A DNA stretch of 64,000 bases, from the sequence record OR620964.1. One strand, given 5' to 3'. Below the pieces are notes generated by a model. The model was not told the DNA's origin. It saw nothing but the letters and a program-made list of their open reading frames with translations, and searched no databases. Below are positions 1 to 6,650 of this stretch, piece by piece. Positions within the stretch are counted from its first letter, which is position 1. Each line of letters begins with the position of its first letter. The translations under genes were made by a program, and so were the position numbers.

Positions 1-615
1 TGCCGTCCTGCCATATGGCCTTTCTTCCAACTACACACTCATTACAAATGTGTAGTAAGCAGTCTTTCCAAGCTGTCTGGCGTCGATTACAGAATCCCCG
101 TTCCCGAACTAGAACAGGTCTAACTCTATATTCGCTCTTTATCGCCTACTCGCTAGAAGTTAGATAACACTCCGGTATAACTTTATAAGGTGGTTTTGAC
201 GAGTATCGATACCTGCGGCGGTTTAATATAACACCTTTACTTGCGCTTTGAGATAGATGCGGTAATAGAGAGAAGGCGCAAACCGCTAACATTTCTCTGA
301 ATCCCTTTTTATGCATCGTACCTCTCACATATGACTGAAAGCAAGAATACTTCCCACATACTCACTAAGCAACCAATGAGTATGAGGCAAGGTCTTTCCC
401 TTTGCTTGTCCCTCTATAGTTATGCAGTTAACATTACCTTTACTGGTAGGTACATTCTGCATTACTCGCGCCCTGAGCTAGGAATCGCCTACGGTAGGCA
501 GTACCCATGCGCGGAGTGCCGATGTTGTAACCCCACTAATTACATGACAAACAGAGTTGTACGGGGGATTCACTCCCTGTCAATCAATACGGCTATTCGG
601 GTGAACTAACATTAA
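1..615 (-). ncRNA. Candidate structured non-coding RNA (may continue beyond the left edge)
   Basis: No convincing ORF. Many complementary stems: 31-37/49-55, 187-192/232-237, 218-224/280-286, 339-344/402-407, 357-364/377-384, 449-453/501-505 and 487-492/494-499. It lies just downstream of a CTGTAAATA motif (630-638). Confidence 0.4.
146..328 (-). CDS. Doubtful 60-aa ORF, alternatively part of the structured RNA
   Basis: GTG start at 328, or ATG at 316 with a GAGAGG SD-like sequence. No recognisable motif; overlaps predicted RNA stems. Confidence 0.2.
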   Translation of the reverse strand: MRGTMHKKGFREMLAVCAFSLLPHLSQSASKGVILNRRRYRYSSKPPYKVIPECYLTSSE

Positions 616-629
616 CTCTTCTTAATTAG

Positions 630-638
630 TATTTACAG
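630..638 (-). promoter_or_regulatory. CTGTAAATA promoter-like motif, copy 1
   Basis: The same 9-mer recurs upstream of the ligase, the 209-aa gene, the helicase C-half, the clamp and the polymerase. Confidence 0.6.
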
Positions 639-663
639 TTTTGTCTCTATTCTTTATTTACAG

Positions 664-2433
664 TTATTCAGTGAAATCTTTACGCTGGACATTAGAATAA
701 TATGTCTCATACGGAGAGCCATACAATTCAGGGCCACGCTGCGCACGAACAGTAACCTTACCCGTGTGGATATCAACTGCGATAATCTCAACTGTAGGCT
801 GGATAGGCTTAATAGTCTTATAGATTGGCGTATTGAAGCGTGGGAAGTCAGTACGGAAAAGATCAATACTCTTATGTCCTTCTGAACTTAACGTAGGTAG
901 CTTGAAGCGAATCTCAGCAACCTTCTTACCACGAGCAATCTTAATATTCGCACGGGTCAGTGGCGCGCCAGCCCGTCGCATATATGCAAAGATACGTCGA
1001 GTAGCACCAACAACACGATCGTATGTGGCATCATCCATGTTCTCCGCACGGAATCGGACTGCATCTGTAGGCTGTGTTGTATCCAGCATCAGGCCAGTCA
1101 CAAAATATCCCTCAAGGATAAGACGGCGAATAGCATCTGCCACTGTCTTCTCATTGCCGCCATATGCTGGCACTTGGAAAGGAGGTGCATCAGTAAGAGG
1201 CTCTGGATACTGGGTCTTATCCAAATTTTTCTGTCCCATTTCAACAAGCTGAGAACCTTGCTTATACTTAGAATCCAACAGGCCAGTTGCTCTGATGATA
1301 ACAGCTTTACTCTTGCCTAAGTCTGCCAGCTCGTCGCTACTTAACGTAGTAAACAAACGATAGTCTACTGGATTACGATAGGTAGAGATAATGCTACGAA
1401 CTTCTGTCTGCAACGAGGCAATATCAGAGCCGAATACGATTCGACTTCTATTCGGTGTATTTAGACTGACAGGGAAGTACGCACCATATACTTGCGTCGC
1501 AACCTTCTTGCTTGAGGCAGGAGTTTTGACCTTTGTCGCATTCTCAAGTGCAGGCAGAGATACACCCACCAGCTTACCCTTGGCAATAGCTTTAGGATTA
1601 GATTCGATCTTTGTTGAAGACAGCACTTTATCCAGATCTGAGGTAGACAAGAACTTCTCTAATGGTACTGCTAAGTTCTGTGCCAGATAGTGCTTCTTGC
1701 GATATGAATAAATAACATCGCCTTTCTGCAACTGAATAGGCTGAGCCATACGACGCTGCACAACGCCTACAGGCGCGAAGGTGTTAGTCTTATCTGCCGC
1801 TACAATACCAAAAGGCTTAGGAGGAATAGACTGGCCGATGATATTCATCACACGCAAATGGCCGCGCACAATAAATTTAATACGAGGACTTTCTTTCTCA
1901 ATCAATTCGTAGCGATCACGATTGAGGTACGTAACACTGATAAGATCGCCTTTACTTAGTTCTAGGTCATACTCATCATTAGCATCATCGATAGTGATTT
2001 TCTTACCGTCATACTTGAACCATTGACGGGCAGCCGCAGAGATAGATTCAGTCACATGACTAAATGTTGCAGCAAGGTCTGACATATGCTGGCAGTAGAT
2101 ACGGGCAACACTTGTAAGCTCGGACGTATCAGGCAGCGCAATCTCAGCACGGTGATCTGGAAGTGCCACATGCAGAGTAGAGGAACTAGACATAAACACG
2201 GTAGTGTTTTCTGGCTTACCTGCAAATGTCAGACCGGTAATACGTTCTACGTCATTGGCACTAATACTAGGGAACGTTACGATTGACCCTGCAACAATCT
2301 CATGGATTTCGCCATTCTGCCACGCATATGCAGCACTCTCACTGCGTCCAGTAAATGCAGTTCCGTATTGTTTGACCGTTTTAGGATCAATGCCAAGCTC
2401 AAGAATCAGCTTGCTACTATTCTTAATAATCAT
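664..2433 (-). CDS. Hypothetical virion/internal head protein (589 aa) carrying the shared W-F-x-Y-x-G domain
   Basis: Long ORF. The segment WFKYDGKK...LSKGDLISV...Y aligns by eye with the proteins at 15378, 24039 and 31562. Confidence 0.6.
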   Translation of the reverse strand: MIIKNSSKLILELGIDPKTVKQYGTAFTGRSESAAYAWQNGEIHEIVAGSIVTFPSISANDVERITGLTFAGKPENTTVFMSSSSTLHVALPDHRAEIALPDTSELTSVARIYCQHMSDLAATFSHVTESISAAARQWFKYDGKKITIDDANDEYDLELSKGDLISVTYLNRDRYELIEKESPRIKFIVRGHLRVMNIIGQSIPPKPFGIVAADKTNTFAPVGVVQRRMAQPIQLQKGDVIYSYRKKHYLAQNLAVPLEKFLSTSDLDKVLSSTKIESNPKAIAKGKLVGVSLPALENATKVKTPASSKKVATQVYGAYFPVSLNTPNRSRIVFGSDIASLQTEVRSIISTYRNPVDYRLFTTLSSDELADLGKSKAVIIRATGLLDSKYKQGSQLVEMGQKNLDKTQYPEPLTDAPPFQVPAYGGNEKTVADAIRRLILEGYFVTGLMLDTTQPTDAVRFRAENMDDATYDRVVGATRRIFAYMRRAGAPLTRANIKIARGKKVAEIRFKLPTLSSEGHKSIDLFRTDFPRFNTPIYKTIKPIQPTVEIIAVDIHTGKVTVRAQRGPELYGSPYETYYSNVQRKDFTE

Positions 2434-2443
2434 TGGTTAGTCC

Positions 2444-2878
2444 CTAATAAGAGATTGGGCTATAGGATAGTTTCTGCAACATCCTCAGGTTGCCTAGCAG
2501 AAGACTATATGCTTGACTACCATACTGCGCTATCATAGCCACAGGTACGGTAGTACCGAAGTAGATTGCATTTTGCAGCAGGTCAGTTATCTCTGTTCCA
2601 ACGGATTTAAGATTGTCATTGACTATCCATGCCCAAGGTTCAGCCAAGAAACGACCTCCAACGTACTGTATACGATAGCCTACAGCAATCTGCTGATCTG
2701 CCTTGGGCAAGTAAGAGAAGATATCTGTTTTCAGACCCAGAGCCTTGCGCACAGAAAACAGTGTCATGGTTCTAAAACGTTGCTCGAACTGAGGAATATA
2801 CGCACTATCGTGGCAAATTTGTTTTAGAACCTTTTCCTGCCTGTCTCTAGATAGAGTGGCAAATAGGTTCAGTCGCAT
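2444..2878 (-). CDS. Hypothetical protein (144 aa)
   Basis: ORF tightly packed between neighbours on the coding strand. Confidence 0.6.
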   Translation of the reverse strand: MRLNLFATLSRDRQEKVLKQICHDSAYIPQFEQRFRTMTLFSVRKALGLKTDIFSYLPKADQQIAVGYRIQYVGGRFLAEPWAWIVNDNLKSVGTEITDLLQNAIYFGTTVPVAMIAQYGSQAYSLLLGNLRMLQKLSYSPISY

Positions 2879-3477
2879 ATATGATTTAATATCCCGCGAA
2901 CTACATCAGATACGGTCATGTCGTTTGTGTCTAACACTACGTCATAACCACCAGGTACGCTTTTATATCTGCCCAGCAATTCAGTAAAGGCAGATTCAGT
3001 TAGGCGCTGTTCGATATTATCCGTCTCAAGACTACGACGAGCACGACGAGCACAGGATGTCTCATAGCTACAGGTCAGTAGTGTTGTAAGACGGCGCGCA
3101 GGAGCCAACAACTTCCACGTAGATTCATAGACGCTTGCTGTTTCTTTATCAATAACCTGATACGCATACGTTGATGGGTATCCACGATCAGCAATAACGA
3201 TTGTGTTAGGCACAGTCATTGCTTTGGCAACAAGCTCCATTGTTGAAGCCCGTGCTGCCAGCAACATTAAAAGTTCTGACATACTGCCAATGTGATGGTC
3301 ACTATGCAAAACAATGTTACGTATATCCTCAGCTAGCGGCGTACTGCCAGGCTCTCGAATACGCACAACATTATATCCGCGCTTTTGAAGTATCTCAGTG
3401 AGTGAAGTACAGACAGTTGTTTTACCTGAACCGTCTGGTCCCTCAATGAGTAGATACATGGGAGTTGATTTAATCAT
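2869..3477 (-). CDS. tmk: Thymidylate kinase
   Basis: P-loop IEGPDGSGKTT, REPG motif, DRxxxSxxAYQ motif (ADRGYPSTYAYQ), 202 aa. Confidence 0.93.
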   Translation of the reverse strand: MIKSTPMYLLIEGPDGSGKTTVCTSLTEILQKRGYNVVRIREPGSTPLAEDIRNIVLHSDHHIGSMSELLMLLAARASTMELVAKAMTVPNTIVIADRGYPSTYAYQVIDKETASVYESTWKLLAPARRLTTLLTCSYETSCARRARRSLETDNIEQRLTESAFTELLGRYKSVPGGYDVVLDTNDMTVSDVVRGILNHICD

Positions 3478-3521: not shown

Positions 3522-4013
3522 TTAGGCGAAACGGCCACCTCTCCAAGCGGCTTTAATAAGCATCTTAGCGATCGTTTCATTCTTCATTATTTTTCTACTG
3601 GCTCTGCGCATAACACGAGCACTGCCCAACCTATACACGACGATAAGACCACAACCCTGTTCTTCAATTCGGGCAATAATTCTATCTCCGTGCGATGCGT
3701 AGAGCGTTTCGTCAATCGCAAAATAAACACGCATAGCAAACGGCAGATACTTATGCCATTTTTTATCCGTATTGAAATCCTGCCAGCAGCTTTTGACCTC
3801 AGTGATAACTATATCAGACTTGGTATTTAAACACCAGACGTCTGCTCTAAGGTTACCGTGTTTGATTAGACCAAACTCTACGTGGCAGGAGTATCGTTTC
3901 TTGTTCCAGTACCCAACAATGCTTTCAGTAATGAAGTTAGTCTTATCGGGTCTGCTCATTGACACAAAATCTGCGACGGGCTTACACTTTACGCTGCCTC
4001 GTCCTCTAACCAT
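3522..4013 (-). CDS. MmcB-family DNA repair / PD-(D/E)xK endonuclease-like protein
   Basis: LRADVWCL...ITEVKSCWQDFNTDKKWHKYLPFAMRVYFA matches the MmcB pattern RAD...EVKSS..DF..D.KW..Y...C..FYFA. Confidence 0.8.
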   Translation of the reverse strand: MVRGRGSVKCKPVADFVSMSRPDKTNFITESIVGYWNKKRYSCHVEFGLIKHGNLRADVWCLNTKSDIVITEVKSCWQDFNTDKKWHKYLPFAMRVYFAIDETLYASHGDRIIARIEEQGCGLIVVYRLGSARVMRRASRKIMKNETIAKMLIKAAWRGGRFA

Positions 4014-5314: not shown

Positions 5315-5930
5315 CTATTGCTCCAGCGTGGTTAACTACGTACTCGATATAGTACGGTGTCATGCCTAAGGCACGAGTATGATCGGAAATGCTGACACAT
5401 AGAGCATCAGCATTGAATACGAATTTACGCTCTAGATATAAGATATCAGGAACGTCTTGTCTATCCGTCACAACTTCATGGCCGTTAAGAATCCCGTTCT
5501 GGAAATCAAACAGTGCGATTCTACGCATATTGCCAACAGGCACCTGCATCGAGCGAAGTATATTCATGCCCTCGCATTCTTCGACAGTATACACCGATAC
5601 TCTTGTACTGAAATAAGAGGATAGGTGATTGCTAAGAGCATCACTAACCAATCCAATACGAGAAAGATCTTGGCTTACAATCTCAAGCCCAAAGCCATAG
5701 TATGGCATACTGAAATGCTCAAAATTGGCTATGGAACTATCGGCATCTAAGTGCATAGGCTGGTCGAAGAATACAAAAGCATTCTGTGCAACGAACTGCT
5801 GTATCTTTACAGCTCGCGATCCAGATTCTATCAAGTTGTCGAACTGGACAACAAACTCCATGTTACGTACCGCAGGCATACCTTCCTTTATATACGTAAC
5901 ACGTTGGGTAAATTGGTGTACAGTGCGCAT
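5277..5930 (-). CDS. Hypothetical protein (217 aa)
   Basis: ORF in operon. Confidence 0.65.
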   Translation of the reverse strand: MRTVHQFTQRVTYIKEGMPAVRNMEFVVQFDNLIESGSRAVKIQQFVAQNAFVFFDQPMHLDADSSIANFEHFSMPYYGFGLEIVSQDLSRIGLVSDALSNHLSSYFSTRVSVYTVEECEGMNILRSMQVPVGNMRRIALFDFQNGILNGHEVVTDRQDVPDILYLERKFVFNADALCVSISDHTRALGMTPYYIEYVVNHAGAIDGQAFINDNVEC

Positions 5931-5939
5931 ATCATGCCC

Positions 5940-6650
5940 TTACTTTCCAATATACTGGTTGGCGAAGAACGCCTCATTGTTAAAGAACTCTTCGAGCACT
6001 GTGTAGTCCAATGTGCCTACACCTACATGGCGCACAATACCTTGCTCAGGCGATAGACCTATATCCAGTATAGGATCGCAGCCAGGCACGATATCTTGGA
6101 TAATGAATATTGTCTGCCCTTTATACTCTTCCTTATCCGTAGATAACCAATGAGAGTGCATAGAACTATCAAGCTCAATGATATACACAAGAGCAAGGTG
6201 CTTGGCAGGTGTCTGCACTGTACTATGACCGAAGATATTCTCCAGTACATCTGCATGTGGGTTATCTAGAATAGTGATCTCAAGATCAGCAAAAGCCATA
6301 GGAAGAATATCAGTTAGCCAGGATTCAACGCTACAGCAAATGCAACTATATTTATCTTCCGCACTGGCTTTAATGAATGGAATCTTTCTGGCAAGAGGCT
6401 TTGAGAAAGTTAGTGTGAAGTGTTGGCTAGAAATAGTATACTTGCCCTCTTCTTCATGTTCTTCAACTTCATCATCATTGTCAAAATAGAAGATACTATT
6501 TGTGAGACACATCAGCGCCATGTTCATCCTCTCCAGGTTAGAAGCGTGATGCTCCTTAGTGCCGGATGAGGTGACACGCACATATGCATCTGTTAACTTA
6601 CCATTTACTATGTGCGTAATATTTACGTTCTGCGAAACAATGATATTCAT
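5940..6650 (-). CDS. Hypothetical protein (236 aa)
   Basis: ORF in operon downstream of the spike gene. Confidence 0.65.
   Translation of the reverse strand: MNIIVSQNVNITHIVNGKLTDAYVRVTSSGTKEHHASNLERMNMALMCLTNSIFYFDNDDEVEEHEEEGKYTISSQHFTLTFSKPLARKIPFIKASAEDKYSCICCSVESWLTDILPMAFADLEITILDNPHADVLENIFGHSTVQTPAKHLALVYIIELDSSMHSHWLSTDKEEYKGQTIFIIQDIVPGCDPILDIGLSPEQGIVRHVGVGTLDYTVLEEFFNNEAFFANQYIGK

Follow-up and report, generated by a model that had tools for sequence, protein, structure and literature searches.

The stretch of DNA considered here, which we call the window, is 64,000 nucleotides (nt) long and corresponds to bases 1-64000 of record OR620964.1, the genome of Yersinia phage fHe-Yen9-02; its positions 1-700 are identical to the start of that record. 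This jumbo phage of Y. enterocolitica O:9 has a genome of 248,678 bp, deposited as a record that is linear on paper. The record start splits a gene-poor non-coding stretch of ~0.93 kb, the remainder of which forms the record's last ~265 nt. We consider it very probable that window 1-663 and these last ~265 nt make up one minus-strand non-coding RNA (ncRNA) locus of ~0.93 kb, consisting of three tandem, separately folded domains. Along the minus strand the order is gp004c (window 664-2433), window 663-1, the record's last ~1 kb, and then the PAAR and baseplate genes. A contig of 6,747 nt from an unrelated DNA run spans window 1-2790 and a further 3,957 nt to the left. Since this contig crosses base 1 of the window, the ends of OR620964.1 are contiguous in phage DNA and base 1 is not a physical end.

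When the end of the record was joined to the start of the window, a diverged direct repeat with a period of 271 nt became apparent (64% identity over 221 nt), the copies of which we named units B and A. The bridging contig keeps the 271-nt spacing across window base 1. Blocks common to both copies on the minus strand are AGACCU..UCGGGAACGGGGA, GACAGCUUGGAAAGAC and AACCGCCGCAG, and no further copy was found elsewhere in the genome. Following two copies of a promoter-like motif, CTGTAAATA, the units come in the order C, B, A; each is ~270-300 nt long, and they have diverged from one another. A preliminary description of the window, made from its letters, had proposed a single minus-strand structured ncRNA region of ~600 nt. 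The window instead holds two of three tandem paralogous units, which run off its left edge, and inspection of the sequence further left, a check proposed in that description, showed that the element continues into the record's end as unit A. The features are listed below; L002 is the record-end piece, in which ~5739-5990 equals record 248417-248668, and R1 and R2 are the covariance models described further on.

Window 655-663, minus strand: promoter-like motif CTGTAAATA, copy 1, directly after the gp004c stop codon.
Window 630-638, minus strand: promoter-like motif CTGTAAATA, copy 2, the copy seen in the preliminary description.
Window 340-593, minus strand: unit C, the most diverged and weakest copy; core at 340-466, from R2 with filters off.
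Window ~518-593, minus strand: 5' domain of unit C, with P1 GCCG/CGGC (590-593/518-521) and joining strand UAAUUAGUGGGGUUAC (~524-543); by eye only.
Window 387-405, minus strand: hairpin X of unit C, loop GAAAGA at 393-398.
Window 358-385, minus strand: hairpin Y of unit C, from the R2 alignment and the fold.
Window 287-339, minus strand: variable linker between units C and B, with indels in an environmental variant.
Window 12-286, minus strand: unit B, complete, with 5' domain (213-286), variable middle (130-212) and 3' core (12-129).
Window 213-286, minus strand: 5' domain of unit B, P1 GCGGUUU (286-280)/AAACCGC (224-218).
Within it, minus strand: P2 UGCGC (280-276)/GCGCA (246-242), joining strand AGUAAAGGUGUUAUAUU (241-225) and CCGCAG (218-213).
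Window 89-129, minus strand: bulged hairpin of unit B, with P3 (129-122/96-89), AGA bulge (121-119), upper helix (118-111/104-97) and hexaloop (110-105).
Window 57-80, minus strand: hairpin X of unit B, with the conserved loop UUGGAAAGAC.
Window 31-55, minus strand: hairpin Y of unit B, from the covariance model.
Window 1-11, minus strand: linker leading to unit A, from the contig across window base 1.
Record 248417-248668 (L002 ~5739-5990), outside the window, minus strand: unit A, from the R1 match at L002 5739-5859(-).

The anatomy of a unit was derived from a comparison of ~20 units of 9 phages. The 5' domain begins with a long-range helix, P1, in which GCGG and 0-3 more bases pair with CCGC and its extension; inside P1, and stacked directly on it, is P2, 5-8 bp long and variable at its tip. 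A conserved unpaired strand of 17 nt, UUAAAnAGUGnnnUAAC, lies between P2 and P1 on the 3' side only, and P1 then leads into CCGCAG..GAU. Units B and A follow this plan, as do 13 units of relatives. A variable middle separates the 5' domain from the 3' core, which contains a bulged hairpin. In this hairpin P3 (8 bp) is followed by the 3-nt bulge AGA and by an upper helix of 8 bp, which opens with an invariant C-C-U pairing to G-G-G and is capped by the hexaloop AGUnGG. Two further hairpins belong to the core: X, with the loop GGAAAGA or a variant of it, and Y, with a long stem and loop types that are common to several genera (e.g. GCUUUCACC and GCCCUUAACA). Units of the same type cluster together, whichever phage they come from; with modest support, this suggests that the duplication is old and that the units have been kept since before the genera diverged.

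Several stems of the preliminary description have a place in this anatomy: hairpin Y corresponds to its hairpin at 31-37/49-55 in unit B and to 357-364/377-384 in unit C, and the conserved helix P1 of unit B to 218-224/280-286. Its other stems (339-344/402-407, 449-453/501-505, 457-460/498-501 and 187-192/232-237) are likewise present, as is the promoter motif it had placed at 630-638, which has a second copy at 655-663. The strands of a further proposed stem, 487-492/494-499, are complementary, but as written they leave a loop of 1 nt, so that the outer part alone can form. Close environmental variants from biofilm and wastewater runs differ at window positions 96, 181, 191, 253 and 254; the change at 191 (T>C) turns an A-U into a G-U pair in stem 187-192/232-237, with pairing retained.

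The stretch is annotated with hypothetical ORFs 001c (146-316), 002c (325-462) and 003c (478-573), and a plus-strand ORF of 92 amino acids (aa) lies at 331-609. Real genes with incidental hairpins would be an alternative account of the locus, in keeping with the annotation of hypothetical proteins in OR620964.1 and with a GAGAGG four bases before the ATG of 001c. None of these ORFs matched Pfam or PHROG, and none had a syntenic homologue in 22 related loci, of which all 22 matched the C-terminus of gp004c, used as a control; translation of the small ORFs and their conservation as proteins is what the preliminary description had named as speaking against an RNA. Phages AD1, Y3 and Alexandra have no annotated ORF in the equivalent 1.3-1.5 kb. 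An environmental variant (95-99% similar) has deletions of 1-2 nt at 303, 325 and 335 and changes at 331 and 333, and these indels, which lie in the inter-unit linker, remove the ATG of the 92-aa ORF and frameshift the end of 002c. The repeat copies have no common frame: the part of unit A that 342c spans is not the counterpart of the part of unit B that 001c spans, and the repeat is therefore not a duplicated gene. Substitutions are compensatory in stems and not codon-periodic. Of all the alternatives weighed here, real genes at 001c-003c or the 92-aa ORF are the one we find hardest to credit, and 342c (L002 5763-5906, record 248441-248584), 001c, 002c and 003c are probably spurious calls. 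Further downstream, 341c (L002 5553-5732) looks like a real gene, with a good ribosome-binding site and a weak PHROG match that it has in common with Yoloswag gp109.

Searches with megablast and blastn of window 1-700 against 50,697 phage records returned the source record alone. Because the RNA evolves too fast for DNA similarity, relatives were reached via the neighbouring protein. The gp004c product (589 aa, phrog_32352) has a KMPT-N domain (PF20294) at residues 137-200 (E 1.7e-15), is ~50% identical across the clade, and is always encoded directly upstream of the RNA. A search with this protein found 56 further phage records, 48 of Erwinia and 8 of Dickeya phages (~50% identity), in the genera Alexandravirus, Sasquatchvirus, Yoloswagvirus, Rivsvirus and Salmondvirus, and a gp004c profile found 23 loci in IMG/VR, metagenomic ones included. 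In all relatives inspected, 1.27-2.4 kb separate the gp004c homologue from the PAAR gene, and the 0.6-1.46 kb of this gap that adjoin the gp004c homologue hold no annotated ORF in any of them. The whole gap is unannotated in AD1, Y3 and Alexandra, and in the other relatives the remainder holds non-conserved mini-ORFs only. These gaps contain internal repeats of 260-380 nt, with a core in common with the Yersinia units.

We built a covariance model (R1) from 7 units of Erwinia and Dickeya jumbo phages, with no Yersinia-phage sequence in it. Run over 198 kb including the whole window, R1 found unit B at window 12-129(-) with 62.3 bits and an E-value of 5.6e-15, which bears out the minus-strand structured ncRNA of the preliminary description, and unit A at L002 5739-5859(-) with 64 bits (E 1.9e-15). 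No other match with E up to 1 occurred within the 64-kb window. With a second-round model (R2), units B and A scored 82-84 bits (unit B 83.6), with E down to 1e-17. Whole-genome scans of 5 phages with R2 gave matches at the RNA locus only. Unit C aligned to R2 end to end and retains P3, the AGA bulge, the GAAAGA-loop hairpin and hairpin Y. The conserved bulged-hairpin pattern occurred in IMG/VR in the jumbo-phage clade only, and an exact two-motif pattern gave 0 matches there. In 596 Gb of bacterial genomes the motif pattern had 14 single matches, about as many as chance would give, with only the pattern part fitting R2, and no host counterpart was found; in JGI metagenomes the Yersinia-type pattern had 4 matches, none of which fits R2. 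One of the pattern-selected bacterial matches, on a contig of a Bacteroidetes metagenome-assembled genome (L064 1532-1627(-)), fits the whole of R2 with 26 bits and E 4e-4; pre-selected by the pattern, it is probably due to chance. In the sequences searched, the RNA family occurs only in a single clade of jumbo phages of Enterobacterales, which comprises the five named genera, fHe-Yen9-02 and metagenomic relatives. We propose to define it by the 3' core, the 5' domain and a position behind CTGTAAATA, with the gp004c homologue on one side and the PAAR/baseplate genes on the other. The fHe-Yen9-02 locus has this position, and units B and A have both core and 5' domain; for unit C the core scores 15 bits and the 5' domain was recognized by eye.

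Covariation among homologues, which the preliminary description had put forward as a check, proved to be strong in the modelled helices. In the 3' core (18 units, 9 phages) 93.7% of cells were paired, compared with 70.5% in shuffled alignments and ~40% when partners were slid by 1-3 columns. Double-sided changes were seen in 23 of 32 pairs, and 0 of 500 shuffles reached any of the observed measures. For the bulged hairpin these changes affected 7/7 modelled P3 pairs and 4/8 pairs of the upper helix, and in helix 4 they affected 10/15, the 15 being 13 pairs of the hairpin-Y stem and 2 that flank it. An alignment of the ~1-kb RNA of 11 Alexandravirus and Sasquatchvirus phages (MAFFT, RNAalifold) contained 242 pairs, of which 93 were compensatory compared with 47 +/- 4 after shuffling, and pairing was 96% as opposed to 33-42% with slid partners. 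The P1 extension covaries as well (GCGGAU/AUCCGC, GCGGAA/UUCCGC, GCGGUU/AACCGC, GCGGG/CCCGC and GCGGU/ACCGC, with GCAGGG/CCCUGC in some Alexandraviruses), and P2 differs in nearly every unit, yet always pairs. P2 did not align in common columns with MAFFT, and for the 5' domain a covariance model was replaced by a comparison of own and foreign partners: the 5' strand makes 6.7 further pairs with its own 3' strands versus 3.45 +/- 1.4 with those of other units (0/5000 permutations). The same comparison did not support a kissing contact of the joining strand with the hairpin Y loop (4.69 bp with own versus 4.45 bp with foreign partners; 907/5000 permutations as good). From all these data we conclude that the locus is non-coding, that it has homologues, that its architecture is tandem and that its structure is under selection.

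No catalogued family matched in the Rfam scan that the preliminary description had called for. Searches of window 1-3000 and L002 4000-6000 with Rfam 15, at E up to 10, gave chance matches only, to snoRNA and viral UTR models at 13-20 bits, and five related loci (38.8 kb), at E up to 1, gave a chance match to mir-70 only. The unmatched models included GOLLD, ROOL, OLE, raiA, HEARO, riboswitches, T-box, RNase P, 5S, tmRNA, 6S and Y RNA, and the ribozymes pistol, twister, hatchet and hammerhead. A Y RNA was rejected since the TROVE-domain Ro protein (PF05731) and RtcB (PF01139) are absent from 5 phage genomes, in which the controls responded; the same genomes lack a reverse transcriptase (PF00078), which disposes of a retron msr/msd, a DGR template and a DRT ncRNA. 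Type III antitoxin RNAs consist of tandem direct repeats of 34-45 nt beside a gene for a ToxN-family endoribonuclease. The period of 271 nt at 64% identity, with gp004c and PAAR/baseplate genes as neighbours, does not fit a ToxI-like RNA of this kind, a rejection made with no dedicated ToxN search. The hexaloop hairpin (e.g. CUCAGUUGGGAGA) resembles a tRNA D-arm in sequence, but its pairing register is a different one; ARAGORN found no tRNA or tmRNA gene in the window or in the whole 248,678-bp genome. Short strings similar to RNase P RNA, 5S rRNA, the tRNA D-arm, pistol and ToxI are leads only, with no Rfam match behind any of them.

The probabilities that we attach to functions below are conditional on the structured RNA being real and leave a remainder that belongs to no named function. 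One such function is that of self- or nuclease-processed units, in which either a nuclease or a new ribozyme fold in the 5' domain would cut the tandem transcript into RNAs of unit length, in the manner of antitoxin RNAs with tandem repeats. A head-to-tail array of autonomous units with variable, indel-tolerant linkers is what this would look like, and in the 5' domain the highly conserved unpaired strand lies in a pocket closed by helices; this may resemble pseudoknotted small ribozymes such as pistol. Against this, no Rfam ribozyme matched at E up to 10, the units are ~270 nt long and non-identical, unlike the 34-45-nt antitoxin repeats, and no conserved candidate cleavage dinucleotide was identified. 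We regard processing as improbable.

All 8 copies of CTGTAAATA in the window (630, 655, 11159, 31551, 51526, 54272, 58532 and 61968) lie on the minus strand, with 0.67 expected. The genome has 24 copies, with ~2 expected, always on the locally coding strand: minus up to ~108 kb and plus from ~104 to 209 kb. The motif is often found just behind a terminator hairpin, and A/T-rich bases usually precede it. Other copies in the window are upstream of two DNA polymerase genes, an NAD-dependent DNA ligase gene and other non-structural genes. CTGTAAATA therefore looks like an early or middle promoter rather than a late one, and like a phage-specific promoter class for replication-type genes. Another hypothetical protein of the window, 007c (3522-4013, minus strand), matches the MmcB-like DNA repair family (PF06319, E 8e-17). 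In nearly all relatives CTGTAAATA occurs 3-80 nt after the stop codon of the gp004c homologue. The Alexandraviruses and Y3 have the motif inside an invariant 8-bp hairpin, AUCUGUAA/UUGCAGAU, followed by UAGUAAUAU, in the first 30 nt after the gp004c homologue (e.g. L029).

A promoter class common to the DNA polymerase and ligase genes would also suit a replication-origin or primer transcript, or an element that acts at the DNA level (e.g. a pac site, or an R-loop pre-primer), and the depositors set the record start here. The structured RNA II of ColE1 is ~550 nt long, and the oriF and oriG transcripts of T4 are likewise R-loop pre-primers. The cumulative GC skew of the whole genome is nevertheless lowest near 106 kb and highest near 210 kb, both away from the locus; the non-coding stretch has a GC content of 0.437, equal to its flanks, with no iterons and no AT-rich unwinding element. 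In relatives the locus is ~80 kb into records that have unrelated start points, and the DNA contig crosses base 1. In addition, the compensatory changes include G-U pairs on the minus strand only, which points to RNA. An origin or DNA-level element is accordingly even more improbable, in our view, than processed units.

Several observations weigh against our interpretation of the locus as a functional structured RNA. The z-score of the minimum free energy (MFE) of the minus strand was -1.6, which is not exceptional (2/20 shuffles fold as well), with -0.6 for the plus strand and +1.0 for a coding control stretch of equal length. Neither hairpin count nor folding energy is thus significant, and the case therefore rests on homology and covariation. 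Unit C matched R2 weakly: with filters off, a search of 700 nt gave 15.1 bits and E 0.0011 at window 340-466(-). Alexandravirus units matched R2 at E 0.05-0.5 only, and what ties them to the family is motifs in common, synteny and phage Y3 as an intermediate. An alignment fitted to a model is biased towards that model's structure, and shared ancestry inflates shuffle tests; we argue from the slid-partner and foreign-partner controls that the covariation signal is real. The only runs labelled as RNA-Seq are 4 wastewater libraries, which hold small parts of the stretch as contigs, possibly of DNA and unfit for ranking expression; in three of them, 5/7 short contigs fell within 1-644, which is no more than a hint of transcription. 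Of possible partner proteins, Ro, RtcB and reverse transcriptase are absent. Finally, the first minus-strand terminator downstream of the motifs is found at L002 5082-5061. Because of this, the primary transcript probably carries three small ORFs as well, and it may be a leader rather than a free RNA.

As a cis-acting 5' leader, the RNA would use its domains for signal sensing or protein binding and thereby control translation or stability of 341c, 340c and 339c; in the Alexandraviruses, the controlled downstream ORF would encode a small hydrophobic peptide. The RNA and the small ORFs are indeed not parted by a minus-strand terminator, and in every relative outside Alexandravirus a Shine-Dalgarno sequence and start codon follow 8-15 nt after the last unit. 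The final letters of this unit are a conserved GGyUGACACCA, at 8-15 nt from the ribosome-binding site that comes next (L002 5739-5800; L022, L023, L038 and L041 in relatives). UUGG and CAAC/CAGC of its hairpin X can pair alternatively with this tail, with one compensatory change (CAAC/GUUG versus CAGC/GCUG), and this alternative pairing may be a structural switch. Such pairing of UUGG and CAAC/CAGC with the downstream GUUG/GCUG..CCAA, in competition with hairpin X, would be expression-platform-like. On the other hand, the downstream ORF is not the same gene across phages (Yersinia 341c matches Yoloswag gp109, not gp111), and ~900 nt in three domains is far larger than known leaders for peptides of 30-140 aa. 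Moreover, the Shine-Dalgarno sequence is not sequestered in the predicted folds, and no riboswitch, T-box or leader in Rfam matched. A leader is, in our judgement, unlikely, albeit one of the more serious alternatives.

The mechanism that we consider most likely, and hold tentatively, is that of a trans-acting RNA that would serve as scaffold or decoy for a protein of the phage or its host. The two tandem CTGTAAATA motifs after gp004c would probably drive minus-strand transcription, so that the RNA would be made together with the replication genes; it would then display 2-3 copies of the conserved bulged hairpin and of the unpaired strand to a phage or host protein. Both transcription from these motifs and a function of the product are what we infer. 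The data would fit an RNA with defined surfaces for contact with a protein or with itself, because a fixed bulge and loop sit on covarying stems, the unpaired strand lies in a helix-closed pocket, and 2-3 non-identical copies have been kept. CsrB and CsrC are multi-site protein sponges, and phage operator hairpins (MS2, PP7, TAR-like bulged hairpins) are bound by coat or repressor proteins. The phage RNA is similar to such sponge and operator RNAs in its repeated conserved hairpin with fixed bulge and loop on variable stems, a pattern that is expected if a protein reads the loop and bulge while the stem merely has to pair. Unlike CsrB, it has 2-3 copies per RNA, each within a ~270-nt domain with more conserved elements, and no dense array of GGA loops.

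Tandem aptamers such as the tandem glycine riboswitch and tandem T-boxes offer another comparison. Homologous structured domains in tandem, on one transcript and upstream of ORFs, are found in both cases. In the phage RNA, however, the domains exceed known aptamers several-fold in size, Rfam gave no match, neither a terminator nor an anti-terminator is present, and the downstream gene is not conserved.

The nearest counterparts known are GOLLD and ROOL, large, ornate ncRNAs with no known function that are often carried by phages or prophages (PMC5737381; 10.1101/2024.12.08.627333). The RNA reported here is like them in being large (0.6-1 kb), multi-helix, supported by covariation and phage-carried, with no explanatory adjacent gene and no known function. 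It differs in having no match to an Rfam model at E up to 10, in its Enterobacterales hosts and in the absence of tRNA genes nearby or in the genome. Furthermore, GOLLD and ROOL are single-copy folds reported as homo-oligomers, whereas the jumbo-phage RNA has 2-3 non-identical paralogous domains on one transcript. Three autonomous folds of ~270 nt might pack into one large RNA architecture, as an intramolecular counterpart of GOLLD and ROOL with a new activity in the replication phase; we think this rather less likely than a leader. If true, the activity of the packed particle could be catalytic, or consist in the capture of a host factor, e.g. a defence or RNA-processing protein. A 2023 screen of IMG/VR for candidate structured RNAs yielded 10,006 unnamed candidates (PMC10690425) from the same data source and with the same kind of evidence. 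Its main text makes no mention of Erwinia, Dickeya, jumbo phages or tandem units, and fragments of the RNA may be among its unnamed motifs. In the literature on these phages we found no description of the RNA.

Altogether, the RNA matches no catalogued family, and its concatenated paralogous domains set it apart from GOLLD and ROOL. Large structured ncRNAs with strong covariation are rare in bacteria and phages. For OLE, GOLLD, ROOL, raiA and HEARO, in-depth study has, as far as known, shown unusual structures or roles. Deposited records leave 1-1.5 kb unannotated at this locus or filled with spurious mini-ORFs, and the start of OR620964.1 splits the element. The RNA is also tractable: the phages concerned are cultivable lytic phages of Yersinia, Erwinia and Dickeya, and its size suits cryo-EM. 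Its design is unusual, with 2-3 anciently duplicated, non-identical domains per transcript and an apparent promoter class that is the one of the replication genes.

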